Assembly (NCBI GenBank): GCA_002269645.1
Contig: NIVC01000114.1
Location: forward strand, 744,001-808,000
Source: Macrostomum lignano
Taxonomy: Eukaryota
DNA: 64,000 bases
Direction: 5' to 3'
The notes under the pieces were generated by a model. The model did not search any database. It had not been told where the DNA came from and was given only the letters and a program-made list of their open reading frames with translations. The position numbers and the translations under genes were made by a program. Shown piece after piece: positions 402 to 57,021 of this stretch. Each line of letters opens with the position of its first letter. Position 1 is the stretch's first letter.

Positions 402-3400
402 CAACAGCAATGCCAGCGGCGACAACAACTCCAGCAACGATTCTAATTATCGCTCCCACCGAAAGCACCGGAGCGGCAGCAGAGCACGTGGGCCCGGAGA
501 ACCCATCATTGCAATCGCAGAAATACTTGTTCCACATGTCGATGCAACGACCGGAGTTCTGACAGACACCCGCTTTACATACTACGTCTCCATGGCAACC
601 AGGCGTTGGTGAGATGGTTGAATCCGCGTCAGTTGCAGACCAGGAAAATCCCGGCGTGTCAGAGGGGAGCGACCGGTTCACTAGCGGGACCAAGTAGCCG
701 TTGAGTCGCACGTTGCCAAGGCAACCCTTGAAGCCGCTGTCGCCAAGAACTACCACAGCCGCAGAGTCGAGAATCAGCGGTGCAAAGTCATGAGATTCGC
801 TGAAAGTCGTAGCAGCGTCGGTGCCATCGAACTTCGCACTGAGTTCTAAGCGCCGTTCGGTGAAAAACCTGACGCCAAACGTAAATGGGATGCTGGTTGC
901 TATGGAGAAATCGGACATCACGTGCTTGTTGTCAAGGGACACTCGCAGATGGCCGGACTTGGCCTCGACAAACAGCTGGCGACCGTCGCGGTTGGTCATC
1001 GACAGCAGACGGAAGTTCAGCTCGCGGGTGCGGGCCCAGCCAGTGAGGCTAGTCAATGCTTCATTGAAGCGGCTGGCCGATAATCTCAGCTTTGTGGAGG
1101 ATTGGAATGTGGCGGCTGTGCGACCTGGCGAGTTTGGTGGATGGACAAGCATAAAATGCAGTCATTTCGTCGCCATTCATAGATATATTAAGAAGTATAT
1201 ATTCAGCTAAGAAACTGGGCGTCTGTATGAGTGCAAGCCTGAGTACAGTAGGTGCTCATGAGTCAGCGATATGGATAGAATTGCTTCAGGTTGAATGCTG
1301 CTGAAAGCGTTGCATCAGGGGTGTCACAAACCTCCTGTGAGTTTGACGCTGCAGTTTTTGCCTCCGAACTCAGCGGGGCAGCCGGTGCAGGCATAATCCG
1401 CTACCAGGTCCTTGCAGACGGCTCCGTTCTGACACGGCTGTCCGAACCGCTCGCACTCGTTGATGTCGACTGAGCAGGTCGGGCCTTCGTAGCCGGGCAG
1501 GCAGTGGCAGGTGAATGAGGCCAGGCCGTCCGTGCAGCTCGACGCGTGAGCGCACACGCTGCGGTTGGTGTCCGGATCCAGACAGTCGTTCGGGTGGATC
1601 TCGCACGTGTCTCCGAAGGTACCTATATGAGTGAAATGTGTTTAACAAAACTTGTTTGCGTTGGAAGCATTGTTTGACTGATGTTAACAATGTCGTGTCT
1701 CCGTCTACGTGTCACGCATGAATGCGTTTGATAAGAGCTAAACACCACACCCCAAGGGAAGGGAAGGCGGACGCGAGTGTTTGCGAGTATCGAGTACAGT
1801 GCGAGTGGATACGACGTTCCAAAATCCGAAAAATGATGGGGAAAATAGTGAAAGAAAAAAAACGGGGGGCACGCAGGATTCAAGCAAGCAATGCTTGCAA
1901 GGCTTGCAAGGCTTGCAAGCAAAAATAAATAAACAGTCATTAAAACAGCACTTAATCAATAAAACAACAGTCATCATTGCAAAAAAAGATAAAATACGAA
2001 ATAAGAATCATGCACGAGTTGAAAAGAAAAAATCGGAGCATTTGAGTCAAGCCAAAGGAAAAAGAAAGCAGACAGCACACCAGCTTCTACCCAGAGCAGG
2101 CAAACGAAAAATTATAGGCATTGAGACAGTTTGAGAACAGCCACCAGCTGGAGGTCGAAGCCCTTCTCCAGCCCCAAGTACACTTCAATCGCCGAGCTCC
2201 GCCAGTCGACCAGGGCCTTGACGACCGGCAGCGGCACACCGGCGCGGAACGCCAGCGAGGAACCGCCGCGTCGAAGGCTGTGCGGAGACAGAGACCGGTC
2301 TGCCAGGCCGGCACGGTGGACGACGTGCTGAAACAGGCGACAGAACCCGGTGCCGGTCAGAGGCGTCAGGCCGCCGCTGCTTCGGTAGGCGAAGAGGTAG
2401 GCAGCAGCAGAGGTGGTCAGGCTGGTTGATGCGCAGGTGGTGAAGCAGCGCCGCCACCGGGCAGAGCGGGTGCTGAGCCGCGTGCCGGAGGCGCGGCAGG
2501 ACAACGCGTTGCACTCGCTGGCGGAACTGGTTCGTCTTGGAGCGCCGAATGTGCAGGATGGCCAGGTCCGGTGATAATTGCAGGTCGCCACATGTGACCG
2601 CCTCGCCAGCTGGTGGGAACGGTTTCGAGCAGCACAGATTGGCCCCGCCAAGGAGGCCCCAGAATCCGACCAGGACCGCCGCCCAGAAGGCTGCATCTTG
2701 AGGCTGCTGCAGGCGCAGGGTTCCTCGCAGTTTGAGGAGGTCACCCGGAGTGATGGGCGCCTTGCGCGCCGGCGGCTTGGCGAGTTTGCGCTGCACACCG
2801 CGGAGGAGCAGGTCGATGCGGGGGTCGCGAGGAAGGCCGCGGCCGGTCGTGAGCTTGCAGTGCAGGTCTGCGGCGTTAATGTACGCACCGACGCTGGCAT
2901 GCAAGGAGAGGCGGTCGGACAGTGCGATGATGTAGTGCGCGACCTGCTGCAGAGACGGTCTGGTGCTGTCGATGCGCATCTGCTTGCAGAACCGCTTTCA
3001 GGAGTCGATCTGGCAGCGGTAAGAGCGCGCGGTTGTCTCAGCGAAGGCCAAGTGGCAAAGGTCGCGGTAGCGCTTGCTGAAGTTCGCGCTCGGGACTTGA
3101 GGCGGGCGATCTGTAGGGCGAGAAATTTGCAGGTGGCTGGCGAGAGGGTGTGCTCTCTAAGGTTGCTAAGGTCAACGTGAATAGAGCCAAAGAGCTGGAA
3201 CAGGAAGTTTGTCAGCTCGCTGATGTCATCGGCTCGGCTGCCACTATCAGCGAAGATCTGGAATGTCCCGGGGACGTGGAAGGCCTGGACGGAGAGGTCG
3301 CGGTGCGCAGCGAGAAGCATCAGCTGTTGCAGAGCCGAGTTGACGACCCGATTTGGCGACGAGCCCTTGTTGATGGTGCCGACTGCGGCGGTGCTGTCAG

Positions 3401-6400
3401 AGTAGATCACAAGCTGGCTGCCCGGTTGCAGCTGCTGCTGGAAATGCAGGGCCGTAAGCCCTGGCGCGAGACTTTCCTTGAAGTTTGATGTGCAGCGGCT
3501 CGATCTCGGTTGAGTCGCGGTGCCAGTCCATGATGAGCCAGCTGGTGATGTCTGGGCGCGGATGATGCCGCAGCCGCCCCAGTTGGACGCGTCGGACTCG
3601 ATGGCCCAGCTGGGCCCGTGGGAACGCCAGATTTGCAGCTGGGGGAGGCGGCCAGGCAGGCGTCCCACCAGCTAAGGATCTCGCGGAGATCATTTTGCAC
3701 GCGCAGTTTGTGCCGCTGCTGCTTCAGGTCGCTGAGCTCGAGCAGGAGTGGTCTCAGGAAGCACCTCCCGATGCGGACCACCTGGCAGACCCAGTTGATG
3801 CGGCCACAGAGCGATTAGAGTTGGCGCTTGGTGATGCGCTTGCGAGAGAGCGCGGACTGCAGCTGAGACTTGGTGGCGTCGAGCTTGTCCTTCGGAAGCT
3901 CCAGTAGGCCGCTAACGGTGTCGATGAGGACGCCCAGATAGACCAGTCTGGTGCACGGCGCCACCACCTTGCTCCAGTTGATGGAGAAGCCAAGCTTCCG
4001 CAGCAGATTGAGCAGGGTGCTCGAGAGCGAGCGAGCTAGCAGTCGTCCTTGCTGGGGCTGCTATGGCGAAGTCGTCGAGATAGCTGCCGATATCGTTGAA
4101 GCCCCGTCTCTGCATCATGCGCTTGACGGCCTGGCTCAAGCGGTGGACAACTTCCACGGAGGCGGCAGCGCCAAAGGGGAGCCGCATGTCGCAGATGTAC
4201 GAATCGCTGCGCTGGTCGCTGAATTTTCACTTCAAGCCGGTGAGCCGAAAATCGTGCGGGCTGATGCCGACACTCCGGTAGGCATTGACGAGGTTGACTT
4301 TGGCCATGAACCAACTGGGTTGCAGTTAGGCGGTGAAGTGACTAACGGTCTCGAACTTGATTCGGTAGTCGGAAGAAAATCGGCTGTTTAAGGAGAGACC
4401 CGGAGGGTTAGAGCAGTCGTGGATGAGTCGAATCTTGTTGTTGCTCTTCGGAATGGCGTCAAGGGCGCTGATGACCTCCGGTTTGTCACTGACTTGAACG
4501 TAGCGGCCATTAAGGATTTCCTCTCGCACCTGCTGCTCGACCAGCTGCCGGTAACTGTTGACTGATACGTACATGTAGTTCTGGATTTCTGACTAGTTGA
4601 GGCTCTTTCTGACGGGTCAGGGCAGGTGAGTTGGAAGCCGTTGCGGATGCCATTCAGCAGGAATTCGCGGTCAGGATCGTCAGTCAGCTCAGTTTCCCAG
4701 GCGGCTGTGGCGAGGTCGGATGAGAAAGCAACAGGGGTTCGACTTTGGCTTCCGCCGGGGCAGCTGCACTGCCAGTTGAGCCCCCCGGCCGGCCGCGATC
4801 TAGTTTTTTGAAGTGCAGAACTGGCGCGGGTGCGCCTTGTAGCAGGCGGAGCAGACGTGCCTGAACTTGCAGTCGCGCCGTAGGCAGCCGTTGCGGTTGA
4901 ACAGCTCCCGCCCCTCAGGATCGATCGGGCCGACGAAGCCGGACAGCTGCTGCTTTGGCCAATGGGCTTGAAGTTGGTGCGCTGAGGGATCGCGTTGCCG
5001 GCCTGACTTGACTTTGGTGCCAGAATGTGCTTGGATAGCAGCTGCAGCGACTCCCTGAGGATTGCAGATTGAGGTTGCAGGATCCTGAAGTCTTCATCGT
5101 AACAGTTGAGGGCGGCCTGACTGAAACCCTTGGTGCGTAAATGCGTAAACTCGCCGAACTGCACACAGTAGCGAATGTAGGCTTTCAGCTGTTCAAGATC
5201 CACCGCGCCATCCTTAACGGTGAGCTGGGAACCCTCGTCGAGGAGTTTCAGCAGGATTCGGTTGCTGCCTGCTACCCACTGAACCTCCGAGATCTGCTCA
5301 GTCCGGACTCTGGACTTCTCGCCAGAGGCGCGCTCCTCGCCATCACGGTTGATAAAGTCCTTCGCCAGAAGGGGCTTTGACGGTCCCGACGGCCTGGCAG
5401 AAGTGCTGTAGAGGCCTTGATGGCCCAGGTCTGGCAGTCCCAGCTCCGGCTCATAGGCAGCAGGGGACCGGTCAATCGGCAAGGGGCTCCGCAACTTACG
5501 GCTCTGTTGACAAGGCTTGTTCTCCAGCTCAGCCTCGATCTCAGCAGTCTGGCGTTGAAGAGTCCTCAGCCGAAGCAGCTTCTCCTGACGGGCGATCCTC
5601 TGGTCCAAATCGTCGGTGCCCTGTGGGGCGCCAGCCTCGTCCAGGGTCGCTACCTCATCGTCGTCGCTGCTGCTGGTGCTGACTCGGTCGATTTCGCTCG
5701 AGTGAGTGGCTGTTGGCCGTCCACGTCGCTTGGCTTGATTTGAGAAACTGGCTTGTTCCAGTCTGACTTGCAACTTTCGCTTGCGACCGCCCCTGGGCAG
5801 TCCCAGTTGGCGCAGACGGTCTCTAAGCTGCCTTGCAGTCATTTGGTCAATTGAAATCTCGGCCATTGCAGTTGCAGCCTAGGCAGCACTCACGCCACTC
5901 CGTACGATAAAAAAGTTCATGCAGCGCGAGAAAGGTGAGGCAGGCTGAGTAAAAGCTAGGTGATATAAACCTCACGGCGGAGGGGTGCAGCGCAGAGGGG
6001 GGGTTGACTTGGGGTAGGTGTTTACAACCAATCAGAAAACGCCGATTGGACATTTTAATTTAAGCTTAAAGCCTATTCAACAAGCCGACGGTCAGTCTAA
6101 CTTTAATTAAAAATAAAACACAGCCAGTAAAAGGGACAGATGAAAAGAAAATTCAAAACAATAGGAAACAGACACCAGCTGCAGACATCAATTAACTGAC
6201 CGCCAGAGGAAAACCCATGAGAAGGCATAATTTGCGAGCTCATTAGATATCCCAGCGGAAAAAGAATCCCGTCATCAAAGAAGATCGGCCGAAGAGTTGG
6301 CTCTGCACACCGCCCTAGGGGCTTGGAGGCTTACCAAGTGAGAAGCGACTCCTCACTACGAGAACAACAACGAAGCCCGATGGCTTGAAAACCGAGGATT

Positions 6401-14324: not shown

Positions 14325-30023
<15,699 letters not shown>

Positions 30024-30537: not shown

Positions 30538-33500
30538 CTAAAAATATTCCAATTCTGAGTTTGGTCTCCTAGACTTGCAGCAGCACGGCAGTTGACCCTG
30601 AAAATGCAGAAAAAAAGCTAAAACGTTAGTTTAGTAGAGCTTTATTGATTTTAACAAGCAAAATCTAATGCTTAATGATACAGTGAGCACTTCGTTTTAG
30701 GTTTCCGAATGTCTAAAAGTTCAAGCATTTACTTTATTACACCTACACTTTACACGACCTAAACTTCATATCACCTGAACATAATAACACCTGAACTTCA
30801 TAACATCTGAACTTCATAACACGCGAACTTCATAACACGTGAACTTCATAACACGTGAACTTCATAACACGTAAGCTTCATAACACGTGAACTTCATAAC
30901 ACGTAAGCTTCATAACACGTGAACTTCATAACACGTGAACTTCATAACAACTGAACTTCATAACACCTGAACTTCATAATTCACCTGAAATTCATAACAC
31001 GTGAACTTCATAACACCTAAATTTCATAACACCTAAAAATGAACTAAATTTTATAACACCTACGTTGCAAAAACACTTAAACGTCATAACACCTAAACTT
31101 CATAACAACTAAACTTTATAACACATTAAACTTCATGACAGCTAAACATCAAAGCACCTAAATTTCACAATGCCTAAACTTCACCAGTCAGTGCTGAGAC
31201 TTGTAAATAAAAATGACTAACTTCCTTTAACGACAAAAGCATTCGCGTTAAATTAACACAAGTCTTTTAAACATTGAAAAATTTAGGCTTTGTGAAAGCA
31301 CTCAGAAAAATAGGCATCAATGCGCATTCTTCTCACAGTTCGATAGACCGCAGTGAAGACGGCAGGCGCCACAACCGACAGCACCAATATGAGCAGTGCT
31401 CCAAGAGCGACACCAAGCACAATGGTGACAGCGCTAGAGATGCCTGTGTCAGAGTCTGGCGGTTTGATCTCGGGGTACCGGCGAATGTCTGACACAAGTG
31501 CAGTTGATTTGTGAAATTGAGAACTCATCGTAGCTGTTTATTTTATTATTTTGTAAGTACATGCATGAATAACATGTCCAATCAGTGACTTGTACGGTGA
31601 TAAACACATAAATTACTTTTTTTGAAGTTCTTTGACAACCTGACATAACAATATGATACCCTGACACTTAGAGGGCGTCCAATATGACACTCTGACATCA
31701 TGTTCAACCCTTTGTTAAACATTTCAACACCTCTATATCTAATTAGACACTCCGATACCCAATGAGACACTCCAATACCCAAATAGACACTCCGATACCC
31801 AATTAGACACTCCGATACCCAGTTAGACACTCCAATACCCGATTAGACACCCTGATACCCAATTAGACACCTCGATACCCAATTAGACATCCCGATACCC
31901 AGTTAGACACCCCGATACCCAGTTAGACACTCCAATACCCAATTAGACACCCTGATACCCAATTAGACACCCCGATACCCAATTAGACACCCCTAAACAG
32001 AATTAGACACCCCGATACCCAGTTAGACACTCCAATACCCAATTAGACACCCCAATACCCAATTAGACACCCCGATACCCAGTTAGACACACCCTGATAC
32101 CCAATTAGACACCCCGATACCCAATTAGACACCCCTATACAGAATTAGACACCCCGATACCCAGTTAGACACTCCAATACCCAATTAGACACCCCAATAC
32201 CCAATTAGACACCCCGATACCCAGTTAGACACTCCAATACCCAGTTACACACTCCAATACCCAACTAGCCACCCCGATACCCAATTAGACACCCCAGTAC
32301 CTAATAAGACGCTCTGACACCTCTGACACCCAAGCTGACACCTTTCTCTATTTAAAAGGTGATTTCTTTCTTTCGCTATTTAAAAGCCTGTCACTGAGTG
32401 ACACTGGATGGAATCTCGACAGCTGATATCAAACCCTGCCGCCCAAGTTGGCACAATGCATTCACTATAGGGATATCATATATTTTTGGTTACCCCTCTC
32501 AGAAAATACAGAATAAACTACGCTATTATATATCGAATTTTTGCACTGTGGCAGTTTACCAGTCTTAAATTTATTTCTGAACATTGATAGAAATTCAAAA
32601 CATAGGTTTGCCAAAAATGGACAGGGGAACATCCTGCTCCCCATGGTGTAGTGAACATTAGCAATGTTATCTGACGGTCAATCTAACCTAAAAATGATAG
32701 CTACATATTATTCCCACTTATCATTCCTACATATCACTCTAGCCCTTGAAGCCCCTGATGCTGGCGCCCCTGGTGCTGGCGCCTCTGGTGCTAAAGCCCC
32801 TGGTGCTAAAGCCCCTGGTGCTGGCGCCCATGGTGCTAAAGCCCCTGGTGCTGGCGCCCATGGTGCTAAAGCCCCTGGTGCTAAAGCCCCTGGTGCTAAA
32901 GCCCCTGGTGCTGGCGCCCCTGGTGCTAAAGCCCCTGGTGCTAAAGCCCCTGGTGCTAAAGCCCCTGGTGCTAAAGCCCCTGGTGCTAAAGCCCCTGGTG
33001 CTAAAGCCCCTGGTGTTAAAGCCCCTGGTGCTAAAGCCCCTGGTGCTAAAGCCCCTGGTGCTAAAGCCCATGGTGCTAAAGCCCCTGGTGCTAAAGCCCC
33101 TGGTGCTAAAGCCCCTGGTGCTAAAGCCCCTGGTGCTAAAGCCCCTGGTGATGAAACCCTAATGAAAGATCCTGGTAAAGTCCCTGTCCCTGGTAGAATG
33201 AAGAAAAGACTGAGTGATCCAAGGCCATTTAAGTGCTACAGACAAGCAGAACAAAATTTTCCTAACCATCCGAGCAAGCCTTGTCACCAGTCGGACACCA
33301 GCAGACAAATCCGGAAGCCACAGAATAACTGAAAGTCTCATTGAAAGGCCACGGCAGATCGGACCTGCCGTACAGAGTCCGGTTGCTCCGCTCCAGACAG
33401 AGCGCTCCTTGGCCTCCCTTGGTGCAAGGATTTGGCGAGCAGTCGGCAACATCCAGTTCGCAGCGTTGGCCTAAAAATTGTCGATGGGCGAATTAGTTGA

Positions 33501-35348: not shown

Positions 35349-38300
35349 TTAAAATTTTTCAAGTTTAGCGAAACTGTTGACATCAATCTTGGTAGGCAAT
35401 GCAGCGTTGGCTTGTTGCTGCTGTCCCAGCGGCTGCTGCTGTTGGACTGGCACTGAGCTGTCATTCTCAATGGTGTCATATACAGTCTCTGACTCTTCAC
35501 TTGTGTCAGGCGACTGGAATTCAAAGAATTGTGAAAACGCCTTACTATTAAAATTGATAAATACACTTTTCTGTAGAATAAACGTGCAATAAACTGATTA
35601 TATAAATATATAATAGTAAGTTCATAACTTAAATACTTACAGTAGTCTGCAGTGGTTTTTTGTTTCGAATTGGCAAAGCCGGCGGTTGTTGTTGCTGCTT
35701 TTTCTTCGACCCCGGCTTTGGCGGCTTTGCTGGCGCCTTTTTCTGAGAATTGCGTAATAGAAAGTCGGTACGCAATCAGCTTAGGCCATCTTCAGATCCA
35801 CGAAATACTTGAAGACACAAACTGAGACACTCACACAGACACAGACTGGGACACACACTCAGACACAAACTGGGACACCCACTCAGACACAAACTGAGAC
35901 ACTCACACAGACAAAAACAAACTGAGACACTCACACAGACACAAACTGAGACACTCACACAGACACAAACTGAGACACACTCACACAGACACAAACTGAG
36001 ACACACTCACACGGACAGAAACTGAGACACTCACACAGACACAAACTGAGACACTCACACAGACACAAACTGAGACACTCACACAGACACAAACTGAGAC
36101 ACTCACACAGACACAAACTGATCAGACACTCACACAGACACAAACTGAGACACTCACACAGACACGACTGAGACACTCACAGTCGCAATCTCTAACACTC
36201 AGAATACAGTGTTCAGCTTACATTGGACTCAGCTCGTCTGAGATTCATTTGATCAATATTAGACGGCCCCGCACCGGATGCCAGACACGGTAACGAACCC
36301 GCGGCACCAGCTGTGTTCTCCAGAACTGCTTTGGTCTTCACTTCAGAGGTAGAATTCGTTTTTTCTAATTTTTCAGTTCTTCCATTTTCAGGCCCATGCA
36401 AAGGGACATCAGCCACCATATAAACTTCGTTTGTATCGTCAGGTTCTGCGTCCTCTTGAACGGCTTCAAGTGCGATGGATCTCTGCTGCTTTAAAAAAAA
36501 GAATTTCTATTTTGCGATGGAATCTTCAAGCATAATTACTTAATAGCAGACACTTTCACTAACTAACCTGAACTGCAAAGGGTTCTATTTGTTCAGGTGT
36601 AGCCTGTTGGGTATTTGCATTTGGTGCTTCGTAGGTTTCATCGTGATCGGCCTGCATGATCACAAAGTTAAGATTGAGACAGAGTTGAAAATGCATAAAT
36701 ACGATTGCAAGCGACCCCAGAAATAACGTTCATACATACCGAATTTCCAACATCAGCAGCAGCTACGTCCGGAGCGACGTAGATCGACTGGAAAAAGTTC
36801 AAATACGAATTTCGACCTTTATCACGTGATTTTAACAAAAAATTAATGGATTATTTCTTCTCAAACAAGAGAGTTACAGTCTAGACTTCTACTAATAGCT
36901 ACTACAAAATGCTTTTTAAAACGAAGCGAATTCACTATGCTAAGTTATAACCCCGCCATACTATCAACCAACGAATGCTGATTTCAAATAATTAAGCCAG
37001 CAACGATCCAATCGCTGAATTGAATTTTGTTTTGCATAAAAACAAAAAAACTCTCCTAGGTGAATATCGATACTTCAATACTTTTTTGATAAAGAAATTA
37101 AAGAAAACTACATTTCTATTTGGGATTCAGAGGACATTTGTTGATTTGTTTAAATTCAAAAAATTATAGCTGTTTTTAGGAGCTTATATATCGAACGAAT
37201 TAAGAGGTTATAACCACAGACACTAAATACCCATAAAATTAAAAGGTATTTAGTACCTGTGGTTACAACTCTACAAGGAAGCTTTTCAAGCTAAACTGTT
37301 TGGCCAATATATACCTGGCTTGGTTTGAGTACCTGGTCCGGCACAATGTTGAGTTAACTACACGCATGGCAGTTGGCATCAATGTTATCAGGTACGAGTA
37401 TGTTCCTAACATTAATAATCATACAAAGTAGGTCTGTCCGTTGTAAATACCTAACTACTTTGTTAAAAAAACTAACTACAAGTAACAAAAAACTGCTTAC
37501 AGACTCTCGAGTTTCCTCAGACGCATTGACATTCTGACTTGACCCCGTATACCGAGGGTTCTGAGTCATGTCCACATAAGTGCACCGACTGTCAGTAGAG
37601 ACTGCATTACCGTTGCGGTGGCCGGATGCGCCTGTGACGGAAGAACTTCCAGTCGGCTTGGGCTGATTATTCCGGTCTCCAGCCGCATTTTGATCTTGTA
37701 AAGCCTACATAAAAATGCGGTGAAAATACGATATCGAAAATTCTAAGCAATATAAAATAAAACGGCTTAAAATTGCAATAGGTTTGTGGAGCTTTAGCAC
37801 CAGGGGCTTTAGCACCAGGGGCTTTAGCACCAGGGGCTTTAGCACCAGGGGCTTTAGCACCAGGGGCTTTAGCACCAGGGGCTTTAGCACCAGGGGCTTT
37901 AGCACCAGGGGCTTTAGCACCAGGGGCTTTAGCACCAGGGGCTTTAGCACCAGGGGCGCCAGCACCAGGGGCTTTAGCACCAGGGGCTTTAGCACCAGGG
38001 GCTTTAGCACCAGGGGCGCCAGCACCAGGGGCTTTAGCACCAGGGGCGCCAGCACCAGGGGCGCCAGCACCAGGGGGCGCCAGCACCAGGGGCGCCAGCA
38101 CCAGGGGCGCCAGCACCAGGGGCGCCAGCACCAGGGGGCGCCAGCACCAGGGGCGCCAGCACCAGGGGCGCCAGCACCAGGAGCGCCAGCACCAGCGCCA
38201 GCATACAATATCGCACCAGGGGCGCCAGCACCAGGGGCGCCAGCACCAGGGGCGCCAGCACCAGGGGCGCCAGCACCAGGGGCGCCAGCACCAGGGGCTT

Positions 38301-41300
38301 TAGCACCAGGGGCTTTAGCACCAGGGGCGCCAGCACCAGGGGCGCCAGCACCAGGGGCGCCAGCACCAGGGGCGCCAGCACCAGGGGCGCCAGCACCAGG
38401 GGCGCCAGCACCAGGGGCGCCAGCACCAGGGGCGCCAGCACCAGGGGCGCCAGCACCAGGGGCGCCAGCACCAGGGGCGCCAGCACCAGGGGCGCCAGCA
38501 CCAGGGGCGCCAGCACCAGGGGCGCCAGCACCAGGGGCGCCAGCACCAGGGGCGCCAGCACCAGGGGCGCCAGCACGGCCAATTTCGGTGCCGAAGCCTC
38601 AAATAAATATATCCGAGTATGGAATCGAACTAGGGATTGTGGGTGGCCGGCTTCACTGCTCATTCAAAACGGTGCTCACCTCATCAATGTAGTCAGCATC
38701 ACGTCGGCTAAAACAACCAAGAGAAATCATTTTCTAAAATTAAGAAATTAGAAATGTCAATATTGGAATTCATATGAACACTTTCAGAACATAAAATATG
38801 ATTGTTGGTCAGTGTTTAGAATTTATACTCACGTGTTTGTAAGCACCGAGCACTGCAAGAATGATTATGACGGCTAGCAGTGCACAGGCAGCAAATCCAG
38901 CCGCTGCTCCAATGCCAATTCCCATGTGTCTCTCTTTTAGCAGTTCTACAATCAATGATAAGTGCATGTAAGTTGATTGGTTATTGATGGTTTAGGATGG
39001 CGTAGCCCTGAAGTGAGGCGCTTGAAAAACTAGCTAATTGTCTCAAAGGTGATTTAATAAATGAGCTGGTTACAAGCTTTACTAATGTCTTTATTTAGCT
39101 ATATATTATTTTTACTGATTTCTCAGGCAATATAAATAAAATGAGCAATTGCTCAAACTCAACGAAACTATCAATTCAATAAGAATATAGTAAGACTGCT
39201 TGCATCTTGGCGAATGAGCTCTGTGATTGATTATAAAGACTCGCATCAGTATAGAATAAACTCTGGTCATAGACAATTTTTTTAAAGCATTTGCTCGTAT
39301 TTTCTTGAGCAAAGCAAAGCAAAGGAATTTTTAAACCATTTTATGTCTATGGTTTTATGCGACTGAACAACTGATCGGTTGGTTGAGAGTTCGCTCCAAG
39401 TTTGAGATAAATATTTATTGAAAAGATATTTGAGCGGTTGCTCAAACTCAGAGCTATTTCTTAGTTTGTAAGCGATTAGAAGCGAAGTAGAATTAGACTA
39501 AACCTTTGGGGATCCTACCTAAAGCATAATTACTGGTTAAGCCTGCTACAATCAGTTTTTACCTGAGACAGGGACGCCTAGACTAGAGAGGGTGAGGTCT
39601 AAACAAGAGAGAGAAGGGAGTGGTATAAGGAAACGATGGGCTGAGGGCCGCCTTCTGGACCTGTCTATGGCTAAGAGGTGAAAAAAACGTTCTTCATATT
39701 TACCTTGAGCAACTGGACGAACTCAGACCTCGTGATTTATTGCTCAATATGAGTCTTGGCTTTTTACGCTAAGCAAAGACAATCTTTAGTCATTTTATTC
39801 ATTTAGCGACAAAACATTTAATAACTTATTGCGCAAGTACATTATGCTCATAGCCTTACATTTGTTTTAAAACAGTATTTTCTGACCATGTAAAAATCAA
39901 GAACTTCATCATAAAAATACTCCTATCTTTTAGCATAGGCATTTCAATGTTAGCCTGTTATAAAAAAGTATCGAGTAGCTTATATTCTCATATGCTCACA
40001 GGGGTGTGTAGCGGCCCTGATTTTCTAATTGTCAGGCATTCACAGTCTGCCCCTTGGTGGCAGTGGTGGATTTCAGGGGGGGGGGGAGGCGCCGCCCCAT
40101 TATGGCTGGCAATGATGGGGTCCCATTTCCTTTGAACTATAAAAGGTCCTCATTGCTCCACGTTTTCTCAGTATGGCGCCACTCTAGTGTATAGTATGGC
40201 GCCACTCTATTGTATATTATGGCGCCACTCTAGTGTATATTATGGCGCCACTCTAGTGTATATTATGGCGCCCCCACTCTAGTGTATATTATGGCGCCCC
40301 CACTCTAGTGTATATTATGGCGCCCCTCTAGTGTGTATTATGGCGCCACTCTAGTGTATATTATGGCGCCACTCTAGTGTATATTATGGCGCCACTCTAG
40401 TGTATATTATGGCGCCACTCTAGTGTATATTATGGCGCCACTCTAGTGTATAGTATGGCGCCCCTCTAGTGTATATTATGGCGCCACTCTAGTGTATATT
40501 ATGGCGCCACTCTAGTGTATATTATGGCGCCACTCTAGTGTATATTATGGCGCCACTCTAGTGTATATTATGGCGCCACTCTAGTGTATAATATGGCGCC
40601 CCTCTAGTGTATATTATGGCGCCCCTCTAGTGTATATTATGGCGCCACTCTAGTGTATATTATGGCGCCACTCTAGTGTATATTATGGCGCCACTCTAGT
40701 GTATATTATGGCGCCACTCTAGTGTACATTATGGCGCCACTCTAGTGTATAGTATGGCGCCACTCTAGTGTATATTATGGCGCCACTCTAGTGTATAGTA
40801 TGGCGCCACTCTAGTGTATAGTATGGCGCCACTCTACTGTTTACTATGGTGCCCCTCTTGTGTATATTATGGCGTCTCTCTAGTGTATATTATGGCGCCC
40901 CCCACTCTTTTGGTTAAAATCCGCCTCCCCCAGTTTATATTTCTGAATCCGCCTCTGCTTGGTTTAGCAGCGGTACCCAGCACTCACCGCTGCCGTACCC
41001 CTTGTCGCACACGTATCCAGCCGCCAGGGAGTATCGAAACTGGCCATTGAACGGAGCTGGCAAAGACGGAATGCCGTACAGACTTCGATTGCTTCGCTCG
41101 AGGCAGGCTGAATTCGAGGGGCACGGGTTCGGAATGCAGTCGGGATGATCGATGGAGCAATTTCTGCCGGAGTAGCCTGCCAGGCATTGACAGGTGAAAT
41201 TTCTAAGGCCGTCAACGCAGGTGCCGTTGTTCATGCAGGGATTCGGCAGGCAGTCGTTAATTGGATTGGTGCAGTTGGGGCCAGAGAAGTCCGTTTTGGA

Positions 41301-45910: not shown

Positions 45911-46046
45911 TTCACAGGGTTTAGCGGAGCAGCAGAAATTTTTTCACAATCTGCACCTAAGATCACCTAGGCAGACAGTTCAGGTTAAGTAGAAAGTGTT
46001 TAGTATAAGCATTATTTTTTACTTAATGTTGATGTACACTTGGTAC

Positions 46047-46549
46047 CAGGGGTGTCGCCACTGAGAGGAGCTAAAATGAAGGACCTGTGGCAGTAAAATG
46101 AGTGTATGCAACGCTCAAAAAAGAGTGTCTGCGGTGCCAAGATGAGTGTCTGCGGTGCCAAGATGAGTGTCTGCGGTGCCAAGATGAGTGTCTGCGGTGC
46201 CAAGATGAGTGTCTGCGGTGCCAAGATGAGTGTCTGCGGTGCCAAGATGAGTATCTGCGGTGCCAAGATGAGTGTCTGCAGTGCCAAGATGAGTGTCTGC
46301 GGTACCAAGATGAGTGTCTGCGGTACCAAGATGAGTGTCTGCGGTACCAAGATGAGTGTCTGCGGTACCAAGATGAGTGTCTGCGGCGCCAAGATGAGTG
46401 TCTGCGGCGCTAAAATGAGTGCCTACGACGCCGAGAAATCAGTACTAGCAAAATACCAATTTCCTAAACAATTTAGGACTTATTTGTTCGGGAATTTCGC
46501 TTTGCCCCCCGCCCCTCGCCAAACCATAAAATCCGTGGCGACAGATCTG
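46047..46549. mobile_element. hAT-like non-autonomous element carrying a 21-bp minisatellite (gatgagtgtctgcggtgccaa)
   Basis: Termini caggggtgtcgccac / gtggcgacagatctg; flanks cttggtac / cttgatgc (6 of 8 match); about 14 internal units. Confidence 0.6.
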
Positions 46550-48301
46550 CTTGATGCTCAACTGTGAGATACGTGTAGTAGACAGAAGGCATCAGTGGAT
46601 TAAAAAGTGCACACAGGAACTGAGAAAGTACTAAAAAGAAATAATTAAATAACTTATTAGTTTCACTTTTTACTTTGTATCACTATTTGATAAGAAAAAC
46701 AAACAATTAAAACAAACTGCAGCCCAAAACAAGTAAAATTCGTATTAATAGTGAAACAAATTATTGTTTTTATATTAAAACTCACAGCAGCAGTCATTCC
46801 TGGTTAATGTATTCACTGAGATAAATTCCTTTGTTTCATAATATATGAGACATGGCCGTGTCTTCGGAGGAGACAACTCCATCTTTTGATTTTGACTTTT
46901 AATCATCTTCTCTGTCACGAAGTAACAAGTTGTGAGTATATAATCATATAGCTGACCGAAAGCCACGTAATTTCATGTAAGCTGAAGAAACAATATATAA
47001 TACCGATATTAGATTCTTGCAATCAAAAAGGAATATTTTACAAATCAATACTGCAGATACTATACAAACATCTACGTCTTTTACTAACAAAAAGTTTCAA
47101 ACTGAAGACTATAAACAATTTGAATAAACGCGTTGTGATTTCATATTCCATGTTTTATTGAGACGCCAACAACACTGCACCGTAGCAGAGACACTCATTA
47201 TGCGTAGAAAAAAAACATTTTTATGCTTTCGTACGGACTTTAAAGATAGCAAAAACAGCCTCTCAAACAATTTCATGTATCATCCGGGGCGCAAACACTT
47301 GTTTACAATTATCTTAAATCTGTGTTTTAAATCATTTAGCTATTTAAAATTAGCTAAATTTAGCTCACTTAACCTTAAAATTAATTTGCTAGATGAGTTC
47401 AGATTTCAACAGAAAATTTCTTGCTGAAAAGCCAAGCTGGAGCACCTCTTCAGCAGCCTCAACGCCATTCCTGCATTACGAACAAGCAACACTGTGCCAG
47501 AATGTCGTAATTAAAGGAACTGATTTTCGCACTCCTGTGCCTTCGTGCCAAAGTGCTGTACAGGTGCACGCTCATAAACAGCGCTTGAACGTCAAGAGGA
47601 ATTCGAAACAAGTAATTTATAGAAAAAAAAACGATTTTAGAAGCCGCTAATTCTTAATGACATAATGAAAGCTTAGATTTCCTCAGGTTTAAAATGGGCG
47701 CGAGAGTTAATAGTGCAGGAAATGAGTTCTACTCTATATTACATGAATACTCAGAAAAAACGATGATTAACTAATAAAATACGCTGGATTCCAGATGCTC
47801 GAACATAGAACTTGCTTTGAATTTCACAAAAAAGCAATTAATGCACCAGGACCCCACGTACTTATCTTTGTTACATTTAAATATAACTGAGTGAAACTTG
47901 CTTGCAGAAAAGAATGTAGCATGAATAGCACAAAATGAGACGCTTGTTAGCTAATAAAAAGCGCAAAATGAATAATGGTGGAACTTTAAGATGAGAAAGT
48001 AATGTTTGCCGCAATCAAATCCGAACCATCTAGGTATTAGATAACGTTCGGTGAAAATTAATGTGCATAAGAAGCAAAATTAAATAGAAATATTAGAGCA
48101 CCGAGCACTAGCAAAGACTGCTTAAAAAATAATATTCCACTCACTGGATATGCGTCACATATAGGTAAATACGGAATTAATCGTGTTAAAACAACGAAAC
48201 TATTATATTGTAGCTCGCACGAGCGTACCGATATCATAAATTATATTGTATTACAGTGTGATATTAAATATTTGAAATAGTCGAAATTTTTAGCAGTTTT
48301 T

Positions 48302-51300
48302 TTAGAAACGAGCGATTTTACTTGAATCGACTCTGGCCGGTAAATCTATTTTTGCTGCTTGCGGTTGCTGCTGTCCACCAGAAGAATCCGGCAAACTGGT
48401 CGGGTGATTATCGAGCTCATCATAGACATTTCCGGGGTCTTCCAGATTAGCGGCTGACTCTTCAGCGGTCTGAAAAAATACAATTATTATATGTATGTAC
48501 GATACCTGTGTAGAAATAATCTGATTATATAATAAACTCCCATACTGCTGGTTGTAAACCGGAAGTTGCGGGATCATCAAAAGCCCGAAGAAATTTTCTA
48601 TATGGTCAGTGCGTTATCGGGCCCTGAATAATGACTGCATCAGCATCTGGCTCTGGGCTGGCAAAACTGCGCAACAAAAACTGTAAACGTTGGCATAAGC
48701 GCGTAGCAAAAGTAGCAAATATTCAAAATTGTCAAAATTGTAAATCGGCACTTTGAACATCAGTCACGCGATTTGATGGCTTATTTGATGGCGGTGTGAA
48801 CAATAGCTATGAGAATTTGTGACTTTGGATGTTATACTGCAGGGCTCGGCAAAATCCGGCCCGCGGGCCACACACATGTGGCCCCTTCTATCCTCTCCTA
48901 TTCTCTTTCCTTTCTTCTCGCATTTCATCAATTCTCTTCTCTCTCCTCTCTCCTCTCACCTATCCTCTCTTCTCTCTTCTCGCCTATCATCTATACTCTC
49001 CTCTCTACTCTCTCCTCTCTCCCCTCCTCTCCTCTTTCCGCTCTCCAGTCTCCCCTCTCCTCTCCTCTCTCCTCTCTCCTCTCTCCTCTCTCCTCTTTAC
49101 TCTCTCTTATCTCCTCTCCTCTCTCTTATCCTCCTATCTGGCCCTAAGATAAAAATGTTTGTCGACTCCTGTTTTGCACGAACAAATCCTGCTCTCATCT
49201 CAGTCGGACACTAGATACCACTGGTTTATAAAAGCAGTAGACATTACCCATGAACCTTTTGCACAAATTTTCACTTCGTATTATGATAAAATGTAAATAC
49301 AGGTAAAAATAAAAAATCGAGACGATTGAAAGCTACTAAAGTTACCATATTGACTTGTCCTTAACTTCATTTCTAACATAATTAAGATCTTACCAACAGC
49401 TGATTCTGAGTTCTCATTGCGTGCCGCTCTGGAAGAGGGGGCGGCACGCTTGACTGCTGCCGCTGCTGCTGCTTCTGCGGTTTCTGCAGGTGCCTCGGCT
49501 TCGGGTTCGGTTTTGGCTTTGAACCACCACTGGTTGGCGGCTTAGATGGGGGCTGATCCGGTGGCTGAGTTGCCTGACTCGATGACTGGTCAAGCGGATT
49601 GTCCGGACAGGCGTAGAATTCGTCCAACTCAACGGGCTGCAGAAGTGAGTTCAAGAAACGATTGTAATTAATCACTAATTTGTTAGAATTTGTTCTATTT
49701 TGAAAATTAAATCAAAGCTAGATCTATTGGGCTGATATTTTGATTTCTTTTCAGCTGTTAAAACGAATTTTATTGTAAATGACGCAAGTTTCTCAATGGT
49801 ATTATGGATTTTACTGACGATATAGATGGCAAAGCAAGACAAAAACAATTTCTATAAGCGCAAATATGAAATATTTATCGTCAATTTGATGTTTTTTTAA
49901 TCATTTTTCTAAAAGCGTAAAAAAAGTTTTTCTCGAGGGGGGGCTCTCAGCTCTACGGTACTAAAAGTAGTCTGATGCGAACTTGAATTTTATGAAACTC
50001 AACTTCAAACTGTACTTCATAAAAATTGAATTTTATGAAGTACAAAATCACAATTTTTCATTGAAAAAATCTAATCATAATTCATTGTAAAGCGGAAATA
50101 AGAATATTTACCGACTACCACCCACTGTACGCCCCACTTAGTTGTCCCACAGGGTATGAGACGAAAAAAATTTGCTGAACGAGAAAAAATCGACATCATT
50201 ATTTTTCTACTTACGTTAGAAGCAGTTGTGTTTTCTGACAGCTGCTGCTCTGCAACTGGTTCCGGAGTCTGGTGTGCATCCGGTGCAACGTAAACGTCAT
50301 CAGCTGATTCACCACCATCGGCAACTAGGTCTGAATCCGGTGTCTGATTTGCATCCGGTGCGCAGTAGAAATCATCACCTGAGTTGCCGCCAAAATCCGC
50401 TGCTTGGTTTTCTTCCTGCAGTTTTTTTTAAATTAATTGACCAAGTGTAGAGAAAAGCGGAGATTAAAATTCAAGCGTTGAGTATTGATAGGTGAGTGAT
50501 TCTTTTGATGAAGACACAGCTATAGTAGAACCATGGACTCTAAAACTATATATGATACGCTCATACTCCTAAAAATATATTTAAAAGATTTGTTCAGCCC
50601 AAGAGTCGAATAGTTCATACGAGGTTCAGAAGCTTTAACAGTCAATCAAGTCTGATGTACATGAGAATATCAAACATTTATAACTGGATGTTCATTAAAC
50701 CCGCTTAGGATGGCTATAAACAGCTATTTCCCTAGAGCCTTAAAAACAAATGCAGAATTTACCTGATCTTCTCCAGTTGCATTCGGATCAGCTTCCTCAA
50801 CCGTATTTTTGAGGCCAGAAGTGCCAGCCTGAGAGGCTGACTGACCGGCTGCAGCTGGGGTTGTCTTCAATAGCTTGCGTAGCTTGGAGCTGGTCTTGCT
50901 TATTAAGCTCATTTTAGCGCTCGATTTAGGATTTTCCTCTTTGGATCGCTTTTTTGATTTATTGTCTTCTTTGTCATCTGCTGCCGCTTGCTGCTCATGC
51001 TGCTCAGTAGATTGGTCTATGTCATTCGGAACAATGTACACTCCACCAGACAGATCATCGGATGCATGAGGTGTTTCTTGAACTTCATTTCGGACAGGTG
51101 TCTCCTGAACAGTAACACGCAGGTATCATTATAAAATCTCAAACTCCTTTCCCGAGGATAACACTTAAAAGTCTGTTTTTTATCTGCATGAAACGCAACC
51201 AGCTTTACCTACTCGTAACTTGCAGACAATGTCCTAAGCCAATTATTTAAAGCAATAGGCATTGACATTGACTAACATTTCACTTTCTTTTCCAAAAAAC

Positions 51301-52843
51301 TGTCACAGTGAGGTTTAAAGCAGCCTTTCTGAAAGACTATAGCGCAAGCAGTGTGTAACAGGTGTTCTAATCCTGCTGCTGTAAGGGCATGAGTGAGTTT
51401 TCAGTCTTTGTTCAGTAAATAATAGTTCACTTTTTTGTTCGCGAATTAATATCTTCCGCTGTCACGCAGGCCAGACTCACTTACCTCGGGCTAAACACAC
51501 CAATTACCGAATCGAGCAAACTCGAATATATAAACCAGCTCATGCGAAACTGGGGGGACCTCCCTGGACGGCGCCAACACTCTATCCTTCCGGAATGGGC
51601 GCCCGGGCCTTTCCGCTGTGTCCCACTTGGAGCTGTCCTGCAGCTAAGTCAAGATAAGTTCCTAGTTTATAGAATCAAAATATACATTAATTGATAGTTA
51701 AACTTGCTTTTTAAAAAAATATTTTAATGTCAAAATTAATCCGTAGCTACTTATTTCAGAGGTGATACACGCATGGGCACTATCACAGATCGGAGTTGAA
51801 CACACCCAGTAAGACGCACTTTTAGGGTAGAGTCAATTACCACAGTTAGATATATGAACCCGATATAATCTGCAAGCATCTTCGAGACAAAAATAAAACA
51901 AAGATAAAAATAACTTACATGAACCGATTCGATTTGCTGCTCAGCAACAACAACGGAGCTCGCATTAGTGCCGCTCATGTCACCCAATTCTTCATCGCCG
52001 GTATTAATTCCTGCGTTTAAATATGCAGTCGCGTCAATATAATGATGTCCATCATTCAGAGCCGACTCGGTACTATCTGGCCTTTTGTTTCGTTCGGCAA
52101 CGTCAGGCTGCCGACATATCAGTTTGCCCTAAAAGTGTTAATTTCGGTTTGCCATATTTTAGTAAGATTTTTATTAAAGGGACTGCCATATTTTGTAAAC
52201 AAATAATATATACAATGGTACCTTTCTAAGCAGCACGACGAATAGAACGACAAGTGCGATTAAGATAATCCAGCCCAGTAATCCGACAATTCCAACTGCG
52301 ATAGCTACGTCTTTTAAATTTTGTCCGCCTGGAACTTTAAATTTTTTCAACTTTGTTAGAAAAAATAATAAGAAAAATAGTTATTATTTAACCACGTAGC
52401 AAAGCATGTCTACTGAACAATTCTTTGCGTAATTAATAACTGACTTATGGAAGCTAGAGTTAAAAAAGCAATTACGAGAATTGATACCCATCACAGGCAA
52501 CACTTCAGTGTGGTCATCAGTGATGTTGCACGCGTCCCCAGAGTAAGGCCATGGGCAGGAACAGAACGAGTCGTTACCAGTGTCGTTGCAGACTTCACCA
52601 TTGATGCACTCGAAACTGCCGCAGGGCGTTGTACTCGGTTTCGAATCTAAATAGATAATAAAGGCATAAACTTCGGCTAGTCAATGTCTCCAATTCAAAG
52701 CTTACGACCTAAAATTTACACAGATTAAATCTAGATAGACTAGCTTTGTACTAACCAGCATGTTGCCCAACAACAGAAGCCGCTGCTATAATCAACAACA
52801 GACAAAGAAACTCTTGATTGTTCGCTGGTAGAAGTTGCCTCAT
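48302..52843 (-). CDS. Single-EGF transmembrane adaptor-like protein D with a ~390-aa YxxP/PxxPxR tail, about 507 aa
   Basis: Exons 52756-52843 (signal peptide), 52488-52646 (EGF), 52222-52334 (TM), 51919-52128, 50763-51104, 50215-50415, 49394-49636, 48302-48469; 1524 nt in frame. Tail motifs HYID, VYIVP, FYCAP, VYVAP, FYACP, PPPLPER, NVYDEL. Confidence 0.8.
48840..49171. mobile_element. hAT-like MITE with a CT-rich interior
   Basis: cagggctcggcaaa...cggcccgcgggcc start and tttgtcgactcctg end (11 of 14 inverted match); no TSD recognised. Confidence 0.5.
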
Positions 52844-55025: not shown

Positions 55026-57021
55026 AGTAAATCAGCACCTTTGCCGAGTGTAATGTGTCCATGCGCCCTTCTCATATCCAATGTACCCTCCCTGTACCTC
55101 CTGTGCCCTCCCCGTACCTCTGTGCTTCCCCCATGCCCCATGCGCCCCCCATACCTCTTTGCTTCCACCATGCCCCATGCGCCCTCCCCATTCCTCTGTG
55201 CCTTTCCCATATTCTATTATGATTTCCTCTCATATTTATATACCCTCCTACGACGCCCCCGTATTCCATAGTACAACTTTGCAAAGTGACATACTTATTC
55301 TAATAAAACCATTGCTAATTAATGCGATAATAAATTAATTGTTGCGAAAACAAATGATTAGTAATCTTCCATCTTACCATTTAACCGATGTTTTGACAAA
55401 ATGCATGGCGAGTGCATCTCGCTCGATCAAATCAGATTTCGGTCAAGAACTGGTCAAGCAATAACCATATATTTGGTGCAGAAGTTCTGCAAGAGGATTC
55501 TTCTACTCCTACATTCGCCAATATCCAGAAGGTAGTAAAACTGCTGTAATTTCGTTAGTCATTTTAATCGGTTGTTAGCTGAAATGTAAAAATACGAAAA
55601 AATCGATGTAATTTTAAACTTACTAAGAGCTTAATTTCACATATCCAACAATATAGAAAAAAATGGCCCCCCCTCATGAACATTTGTTATGGTACGGACA
55701 AAGCTAGTCATAACAAAGATAATCTTTAGAATCTTTAGAACAAGCTCTTATACAATGAAATAAAAAAATAATGAAGGAAATCAATTGCAATTAAAAAGTT
55801 AAAGCTGATACGTTTCGACACAAACGGTTATCTTCAGGTCTTACACCTCGCCAAACAGCAAATCAGTATATTTAACTTGCAATCAGCGCACAAGAACGCT
55901 CCTCATGAGCTAAGGCTCAAAGCATCTCAAAGCAATACCACCATAAGCTTTGACAATTCAGCAATTTCCAGAATAAATCAGTGAATTGAAAGTGTTGTAG
56001 GTCATCTACTCTGTTTTCATCGCTTAAAAATGTAATGTACATTTACCGGCTGGACTGAAGCCGAATTTTCTACTGCCTAGTGCAGTTTTGACGTGTAAGC
56101 CCTGATGACAGCTTGTATCAAAACGCGATGGTTTTACCCTTGAATATTGGTGGTGACCTTAATTCTTTTATTTATTTGTTAAACGAGAATTTCTGCCGGA
56201 CAAAGCACGATCTTGATGGATCTTGTTAAGATGATCAGCATTGATCCAGCTAATGAGCGCATTGATCAATTAAAAAGCACACACAAGCTATTAATGATAC
56301 TACTCTTTAGGTACCAATCAACACGTCAAAATAATTGACCTTTTGTTGATTTCTAGAGTAAAAGTTTAAATACAAAACACTTATCGGGAATAAAATTTGA
56401 ATAAATTGAGTTAAAAGATAAAAAGCAAAAAAATAAAAAATATATTAAAATAAAAATCTAGATTAAAAACATTGACACGGTTAGAGCAGTCACTGGCCAA
56501 TACGATTTTTTTGGTTGGCAACGTTAAAATAATCAAAATAAAACTTTAACAACAGTTTTTGATTCGAGCTTTAAAAAAGACCCGAATAACTTTTCTAGCG
56601 AACGGATTCATATAAATACTTCCGAGCGTAGTGTGAGATGCAGTGCTTTGTATCCGTAACGTAAAAATATATATTTTTGCAGACACCGTACCACAGAAAG
56701 TGTTGAGGCAAGCCTGCTCATTCCGCTGCCTCCTGAGCACATTCATGTACAAGTGCGCCAATACTGTACGCAGGCACGCACTCGCTAACTCGCTCACACA
56801 GGGTGTAAAGCAACTCTCATGGGTATATGAATCGGATGACAAAGTATTAAATGTTACTGCGCATGGAGCCGAACTAGCTGTGGCGTTGTGGCGCAGGGGT
56901 CAATCGGCTGCCCCGCTATAGAATTAAAAACACATACTTGCATGAAAAAAATTGTTTTAAACAAAAACTAAGAGATATTTAATCAGATGTTGGTTTGTTT
57001 CATATATCACACAGTATTTTT

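Follow-up and report, generated by a model that had tools for sequence, protein, structure and literature searches.

A predicted single-EGF membrane protein of Macrostomum lignano with a disordered, YxxP-bearing tail: a possible lineage-restricted receptor-scaffold

A 64,000-nt stretch of the flatworm Macrostomum lignano genome (contig NIVC01000114.1 of assembly GCA_002269645.1, positions 744,001 to 808,000 of the forward strand; hereafter the window) carries on its minus strand a gene, referred to here as gene D, that is annotated as BOX15_Mlig018087g1 (Mlig018087.g1) and whose complete 521-aa product, PAA90325.1 (P0004), provides the residue numbering used throughout. Gene D is real and transcribed, and was already present in the public annotation as a hypothetical protein (UniRef name 'EGF-like domain-containing protein'). 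Its product is predicted to be a type I single-pass membrane protein, with one EGF domain outside the cell and a long tail inside. With a probability of about 0.4, we favour the reading that it is a lineage-restricted type I receptor-scaffold, whose tail would act as a docking platform built on phosphotyrosine and proline motifs.

Nine exons with GT-AG introns, distributed on the minus strand between 55380 and 48302 (Table 1), rebuild PAA90325.1 residue for residue, and a three-frame translation of the minus strand from 52900 to 48250 yields eight open segments that are joined at canonical GT-AG sites into a single open frame, all tail introns being in phase 0. The M. lignano annotation relies on genome-guided transcriptional units assembled from RNA-seq and cut at trans-splice and poly(A) sites mapped by experiment, in which TransDecoder identifies the open reading frames (ORFs; PMC5730564). 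Two other genomic copies have partial models that are consistent with this structure: P0003, extending from the 5' untranslated region to tail exon 3, chains the signal peptide, EGF, transmembrane (TM) segment and tail, and P0001, extending from the TM to the stop, chains the TM and the tail, each independently of PAA90325.1; gene D transcripts have been assembled from at least three loci. A preliminary description of this DNA, made from its letters, had delineated the gene by a series of peptide strings, all of which were found on the minus strand between 52843 and 48302, and had allowed for a lack of splicing between the upstream exons (signal, EGF and TM) and those of the tail, an objection refuted by the annotated transcript model, which splices them together. 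The span that it proposed (52843-48302) was right at the stop codon but not at the start, as the annotated start lies upstream and adds 10 residues before the MRQLL start at 52843, which is the second in-frame ATG. In PAA90325.1, the EGF exon also extends 12 nt in the 3' direction, to 52476 (donor C/gtaatt, the slash marking the splice site), thus adding GINS between the EGF and the TM.

Several competing gene models were considered and set aside. The EGF-exon donor G/gtatca combined with the start at ATG 52843 was replaced, since PAA90325.1 shows both the additional GINS and the upstream ATG exon, and a trans-spliced leader as the source of the N-terminal Met was rejected in favour of the cis-spliced 5' exon at 55380. 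There is no support for the idea that gene D supplies the TM and tail absent from the 3' end of gene C, which lies upstream: a separate 5' exon, start codon and signal peptide belong to gene D, and the annotated coding sequence of gene C ends at 57022. UniProt entry A0A1I8JB73 (P0002; 762 aa, older assembly) was likewise rejected as evidence of a TM-less isoform: this aberrant model combines gene D lacking its TM exon with intronic ORFs, the transposon ORF at 45273-44647 and the start of gene E, and is a mis-annotation unfit for use.

The protein is organized as a signal peptide, one EGF, a TM helix, the RKGKLIC segment and a 389-residue tail. The h-region of the signal was located by hydropathy at residues 22-35, within a helix placed at 19-37 by AlphaFold2 (AF2), which was run on the single sequence, and the mature ectodomain amounts to ~65 residues, including two N-glycosylation sequons (NDT and NIT). 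The six cysteines of the EGF, C1 to C6, span residues 48-79 (CGSFECINGEVCNDTGNDSFCSCPWPYSGDAC) with the spacing C-x4-C-x5-C-x8-C-x-C-x8-C and an aromatic-x-G before C6, and AF2 predicts beta-hairpins in this region (residues 45-69). The Pfam EGF score (PF00008 / hEGF type) reaches 12.3 bits, under the 21.5 cut-off. The best phmmer matches in PDB are a Jagged-1 EGF (E = 8.2e-5), then factor IX, DLL1 and Notch1, whereas the EGFR ligands (EGF, TGF-alpha, neuregulin) score only E = 0.1-0.9; because of this preference, the domain is assigned, on sequence grounds, to the Notch/Jagged type and not to the growth-factor type. The longer C1-C2 loop and the family similarity that characterize EGFR ligands were not found either, the C1-C2 loop of gene D being of 4 residues. 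The TM corresponds to residues 106-132 (Kyte-Doolittle > 1.6 for windows starting at 102-122; AF2 helix at 102-133, with a predicted local distance difference test score, pLDDT, of ~90), and is followed at residues 133-139, as previously described, by RKGKLIC, whose single Cys, Cys139, lies seven residues past the TM; there is no CxxC.

The tail itself (residues 133-521) is acidic, with a net charge of -29 and 69% disorder-promoting residues, and by charge-hydropathy its composition is classed as disordered. From about residue 147 onwards, AF2 predicts no secondary structure and a pLDDT < 50, and beyond residue 133 only three residues are helical, so that the ~390 disordered residues announced in the preliminary description are borne out by both predictions over 389 aa. 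The motifs that it had listed are also present: four YxxP repeats (at Y227, Y335, Y360 and Y393), PPPLPER as part of VPPPLPER at 449-456, which fits PxxPxR, NVYDEL at residues 480-485, in which YDEL fits YxxΦ (Φ, hydrophobic residue), and the basic stretch KLRKLLK, within a basic island (253-284) of the otherwise acidic tail. Seven tyrosines are found in total (YIDA 164, YLNA 170, YIVP 227, YCAP 335, YVAP 360, YACP 393 and YDEL 482), including a motif unmentioned so far, YLNA at 170-173, of the YxN or Grb2 type; no NPxY occurs in the tail. All four YxxP units can be written as ΦYxxP[D/N], and three of them also as [DE][DE]ΦYxxPD. A Pro at +3 is observed for 4/7 tail tyrosines (shuffle P = 0.0017), and three copies of [DE][DE]xYxxP are present, compared with none in 200,000 shuffles. 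By these shuffles the YxxP count exceeds chance. Because these copies are internal repeats, the enrichment does not reflect independent events.

How these repeats arose can be partly read from their divergence. R1 (…GGNSGDDFYCAPDANQTPD…) and R2 (…GGESADDVYVAPDAHQTPE…) form a 25-aa tandem duplication that is still visible in the DNA (50336-50382 versus 50261-50307, 79% identity over 47 nt), while R3 in the next exon and R0 in the previous one share only ΦYxxP[D/N] with them. Between R1 and R2, 3 of the 13 residues of the core DDΦYxAPDAxQTP are changed, all at Φ or x positions, versus 9 of 12 in the flanks (Fisher P = 0.017, for a core defined post hoc), and most core codons are identical. ΦYxxP[D/N] would thus be the sole element kept through successive duplications, and this persistence therefore provides modest internal evidence that the motif matters.

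The extracellular part points to a neighbouring gene. The preliminary description had matched the EGF of gene D to EGF1 of gene E, and the comparison agrees (CSCPWPYSGDACNITDD region, E = 1.4e-8, 45% identity across 58 aa); the remaining EGFs of the window all have E > 0.02. No DNA-level similarity was detected between the gene D EGF and gene E EGF1, and the copy is therefore not very recent. No similarity of the TM or of the tail was found to gene E, to the Crumbs-like paralogs or elsewhere in the window. The proposed origin of gene D from a Crumbs-cluster gene consequently holds for the EGF exon only, but not for the TM and tail, which lack relatives in the window or elsewhere. The EGF exon of gene D is symmetric (phase 1-1), and that of gene E EGF1 (~42400) is likewise entered in phase 1. 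Phase 1-1 exons are the classic arrangement for the exon shuffling of extracellular modules.

In the favoured reading, a single Notch/Jagged-type EGF would be exposed on a short stalk and N-glycosylated, its exon probably being a duplicated or shuffled copy of the phase 1-1 exon that encodes EGF1 in gene E. On the cytosolic side, kinases of the Abl or Src family would phosphorylate the units centred on Y227, Y335, Y360 and Y393, and the phosphorylated ΦYxxP[D/N] would be read by pYxxP-class SH2 domains (those of Crk, Nck, RasGAP or Abl), whereas YLNA may bind SH2 domains of the Grb2/Drk type, VPPPLPER may bind an SH3 domain, and NVYDEL could be either an SH2 site or a YxxΦ endocytic signal. 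We infer all of these aspects, namely phosphorylation, binding partners, palmitoylation of Cys139, an EGF ligand and the biological function. Published data give this scheme a biochemical context: c-Abl has a strong preference for Pro at +3 and also favours an aliphatic residue at -1 and Ala at +1, with the consensus peptides …PIYAVPP… and …VIYATPG… (PMC10065799), a preference matched by the gene D repeats (compare DDVYVAPD and DEFYACPD). These also match pYxxP, the consensus of the Crk/CrkL SH2 domain, and a Crk-type SH2 is bound by unrelated TM proteins of choanoflagellates that carry arrays of YxxP in the cytosol (PMC5043372); flatworm kinomes include the Src, Abl, Csk, FAK and Syk families (PMC12837073).

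The protein is a member of neither the LAT/PAG-type nor the Cas family, and is neither a Crumbs nor an EGFR-ligand type protein. Like LAT, PAG/Cbp, NTAL, LIME and SCIMP, it crosses the membrane once, carries a juxtamembrane Cys, and combines tyrosine docking motifs with a proline motif in a long disordered tail. However, these adaptors have a very short, unfolded ectodomain of a few residues and a CxxC directly at the membrane, and usually lack a cleaved signal, while gene D has a signal peptide, a folded and glycosylatable EGF in a ~65-residue ectodomain, and one Cys seven residues after the TM. Their motifs are mainly YxN or YxxL/V and not YxxP, and they show no sequence homology to gene D, whose multiple SH2-docking tyrosines (four YxxP, one YxN, one YxxL) resemble theirs at the motif level only. 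The LAT/PAG-type likeness put forward earlier is thus a loose one, retained for the juxtamembrane Cys and for the multiple tyrosine motifs in a disordered tail, but not for the ectodomain, the cleavable signal or the CxxC. A Cas-like nature is similarly limited to the YxxP context: the substrate domain of p130Cas/BCAR1 and Dok-type arrays display the same grammar of acid-preceded ΦYxxP in disorder, corresponding to Src/Abl substrates and Crk SH2 ligands (PMC5043372), but gene D is membrane-anchored and its N-terminus is a signal peptide followed by an EGF; no SH3 of the Cas family (BCAR1/NEDD9/EFS) was found by Pfam, and no C-terminal FAT-like helical domain by Pfam or AF2.

The closest architectural precedent is found in choanoflagellates, where several TM-YxxP proteins (S. 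rosetta PTSG_05573, PTSG_12435 and PTSG_12436; M. brevicollis A9VAL3 and A9V449) likewise join an extracellular module through a TM to several YxxP repeats in the cytosol, and PTSG_05573 phosphopeptides bind Crk-type SH2 domains (PMC5043372). Their ectodomains (DUF5011, TSP1, growth-factor-receptor-like) differ from that of gene D, some carry SH2-like domains, their motif is of the YDVP type, and they have no detectable homology to gene D. Draper, CED-1, MEGF10 and PEAR1 are, like the proposed scaffold, EGF-bearing type I receptors signalling via tail tyrosines, but with EMI or NIM domains, many EGFs, NPxY and YxxL/ITAM (immunoreceptor tyrosine-based activation motif) sites, whereas gene D has one EGF, no NPxY and no match to the family. 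With Crumbs and the neighbouring EGF/LamG genes, gene D shares an EGF module, and it lies within the tandem cluster of these neighbours; Crumbs proteins have many EGF and LamG repeats and a short (~37 aa) FERM/PDZ-binding tail ending in …ERLI, in contrast to the one EGF, the absence of LamG and the 389-aa tail of gene D, which ends in KIARF.

The LAT/Cas-like membrane scaffold that the preliminary description had envisaged therefore stands for the architecture, the splicing and the motif grammar, but not for the family analogies, the origin of the tail or its function. If the tail is indeed a phosphotyrosine docking platform, it would illustrate a route in which a borrowed extracellular exon and a membrane anchor are combined with a disordered tail that multiplies one kinase/SH2 motif, while the membrane-anchored tyrosine-motif scaffolds cited here, with YxxP arrays or of the LAT/PAG type, are from choanoflagellates and vertebrates only. 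A narrower version of the proposal, in which a recent flatworm-specific scaffold united a shuffled Notch-type EGF exon, a TM and an ancestry-less tail that convergently evolved an Abl/Src-substrate and Crk/Nck/Grb2-docking array by internal duplication, is doubtful; were it true, it would offer a natural and datable case of a phosphotyrosine scaffold born by convergence, and in an animal that regenerates. As M. lignano is amenable to RNA interference and transgenesis, the idea is directly testable.

What, then, weighs against a receptor-scaffold? A protein search with the spliced gene D model returned two proteins only, both from M. lignano, to which a cluster look-up added two. No relative of the TM and tail was found outside M. 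lignano by exhaustive phmmer of 1.84 billion representative proteins, a word-indexed search of 5.8 billion clusters gave no gene D relative beyond this species, and neither PDB matches for the TM and tail nor Pfam families for the tail were detected; from these searches, gene D appears so far to be known only from M. lignano. No ortholog, in which the preliminary description had expected the YxxP motifs to be conserved, is present in these collections. The genome contains three copies (the window, L001, and L003 on NIVC01001242.1), 97.2-97.4% identical over ~8.4 kb, among which exon divergence (1.0-1.7%) is merely slightly under intron divergence (1.5-2.5%). The ratios of nonsynonymous to synonymous differences per site (pN/pS) of the three copy pairs are 0.89, 0.50 and 0.81, each based on 5-7 synonymous changes, and show no clear sign of purifying selection, with low power. 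The copies differ at only 2-3 positions, introns included, over ~2.76 kb (50984-48221) that begin midway through tail exon 2 and end 80 nt beyond the stop, while the flanks differ by 3-4%, a pattern that suggests recent gene conversion or homogenisation during assembly; because they lie inside this near-identical tract, three of the four YxxP units yield no comparative information. In the motif's favour, copy L001 keeps YIVP although two nearby residues are substituted (positions -2 and +4 of Y227, G to E and N to D, respectively). The L003 copy carries 1-nt deletions at the window equivalents of 50391 and 49441 (tail exons 3 and 4), in exons that are otherwise identical; they would shift the reading frame immediately ahead of the YxxP repeats and thereby remove these, and the end of P0003 is read in the altered frame. 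These deletions are either PacBio indel errors or the mark of a decaying, pseudogenised copy: the 521-codon frame is intact in two copies, and the third is intact but for single-base deletions typical of PacBio assemblies. Moreover, four YxxP are far fewer than the ~15 of Cas, although their acidic and aliphatic context is the same, disordered sequence rich in acidic residues and Pro invites over-reading of short linear motifs, and no published work on Mlig018087 and Mlig022268, whether expression pattern or phenotype, was found in the literature and supplements searched.

Some of these observations would also be expected from a young chimeric orphan with little or no selected function, in which the EGF exon of the adjacent multi-EGF gene became associated with a TM and a new low-complexity tail, and which is transcribed but drifts near-neutrally. 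Such an origin is possible, though less likely than a receptor-scaffold, and it is with the same reserve that the tyrosine motifs may be seen as the reflection of recent internal duplication, and not of selection, in a rapidly duplicating, transposon-rich cluster. The failure to find tail homologs anywhere, pN/pS values of 0.5-0.9 with exons diverging about as much as introns, two frameshifting deletions in one copy out of three, R1/R2 core codons mostly identical, as fits recency, and a location among truncated or duplicated EGF/LamG genes, transposon fragments and microsatellites are all in keeping with it. It accounts less well for a nine-exon frame of 521 codons intact in two copies, for a proper signal peptide, six-Cys EGF and TM, for transcripts from at least three loci, and for the older repeats R0 and R3, diverged except at ΦYxxP[D/N], which suggests motif retention. 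A drifting orphan would nevertheless provide a cautionary case of acidic, Pro-rich disorder that mimics signalling motifs.

Alternatively, gene D might encode a functional type I surface protein whose EGF is the working part (in adhesion, as a ligand or as a co-receptor), and whose tail serves trafficking or other roles unrelated to phosphotyrosine, for example with YDEL as a signal for endocytosis (YxxΦ), with acidic clusters and with a polybasic stretch for lipid binding. We consider this unlikely: a tail of 389 residues is long for pure sorting, and its best-kept and most often repeated element, ΦYxxP[D/N], is not a known sorting signal, because its +3 position is Pro and not Φ, even if YDEL does fit YxxΦ, the basic stretch 253-284 stands out in the acidic tail, and the Notch/Jagged-type EGF with its two sequons is bona fide. 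The signal-EGF-TM-tail order is also that of membrane-anchored EGF-family ligands, but the C1-C2 spacing of 4 and the best PDB matches, to Notch, Jagged and factor IX, with EGFR ligands at E = 0.1-0.9, argue against such a ligand. Regulated proteolysis, with shedding and intramembrane cleavage releasing a tail that would enter the nucleus via its KKRSK / KLRKLLK basic stretch, is very unlikely: no cleavage-site feature, transcription-related domain or homology was found for it, and the tail is strongly acidic overall, despite the K-K/R-x-K/R-like basic cluster at 253-284 and the kinship of the EGF with Notch-pathway proteins.

Table 1. Exons of gene D and neighbouring features in the window (slashes mark splice sites).
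Feature	Position	Strand	Remarks
Gene D exon 1, start codon	55380-55378	minus	last 3 nt of a mostly untranslated 5' exon; donor ATG/gtaaga; preceded by in-frame TAA
Gene D exon 2, signal peptide	52870-52756	minus	TDRVFDIGA-MRQLLPANNQEFLCLLLIIAAASVVGQHA; holds second in-frame ATG 52843; ends in phase 1
Gene D exon 3, EGF	52646-52476	minus	171 nt, symmetric phase 1-1; six Cys; sequons NDT, NIT
Gene D exon 4, TM	52334-52222	minus	…LPGGQNLKD-VAIAVGIVGLLGWIILIALVVLFVVLL-RK
Gene D exon 5 (tail exon 1)	52128-51919	minus	GKLIC (juxtamembrane Cys139), YIDA, YLNA (YxN, Grb2-type)
Gene D exon 6 (tail exon 2)	51104-50763	minus	repeat R0 GGVYIVPND (Y227); basic stretch KSKKRSK…KLRKLLK (253-284)
Gene D exon 7 (tail exon 3)	50415-50215	minus	tandem 25-aa repeats R1 (GDDFYCAPDANQTP, Y335) and R2 (ADDVYVAPDAHQTP, Y360)
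Gene D exon 8 (tail exon 4)	49636-49394	minus	R3 (LDEFYACPDNP, Y393); Pro/Lys-rich stretch; VPPPLPER (class II PxxPxR, SH3-type)
Gene D exon 9 (tail exon 5)	48469-48302	minus	NVYDEL (YxxL); C-terminus …KIARF; stop TAA
CT-rich microsatellite	48885-49133		in last intron of gene D; non-coding; plus-strand ORFs there are artefacts
Gene C	from beyond 64000 to 57022	minus	EGF and LamG
Transposon-derived ORF	45273-44647	minus	between gene D and gene E
Gene E	from 42645 downward	minus	multi-EGF
Fuller EGF/LamG/TM copy	~29956-14853	minus	
Second fuller EGF/LamG/TM copy	10058 to below 400	minus	

Around gene D, tandem paralogs in partial decay make up the cluster. Gene C (64000-57022) has no counterpart of the terminal LamG-EGF-TM exon found at 15512-14856 and at 1056-400, and is possibly a shortened copy. 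On neither strand of the whole window was an exon found that terminates in a Crumbs-type E[RKH][LI][IVL]-stop; the 'Crumbs-like' label fits the EGF/LamG ectodomains of the neighbours only, and these genes may lack canonical Crumbs tails, or have tail exons that are no longer recognisable. Rfam and tRNA scans of the window gave no matches. The first EGF/LamG copy contains, at 2112-5866 on the minus strand, a GC-rich (~60%) insertion whose long ORFs match Phage_integrase (tyrosine recombinase; 23 bits, sub-threshold) and SAP, and which looks like a DIRS/Ngaro-type retroelement by its sequence. Mini- and microsatellite arrays open on both strands (23196-24118, 27070-27456, 28627-29130, 32664-33332, 37667-38692 and 46012-46567), encoding GAPGAK, CLSV, PLVLK and similar strings, are likely to seed false gene predictions. 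Downstream of the EGF exons of gene E, an ORF with a strong hydrophobic segment (38991-38812, minus strand) is possibly the TM exon of that gene, which would then encode an EGF-only single-pass protein.

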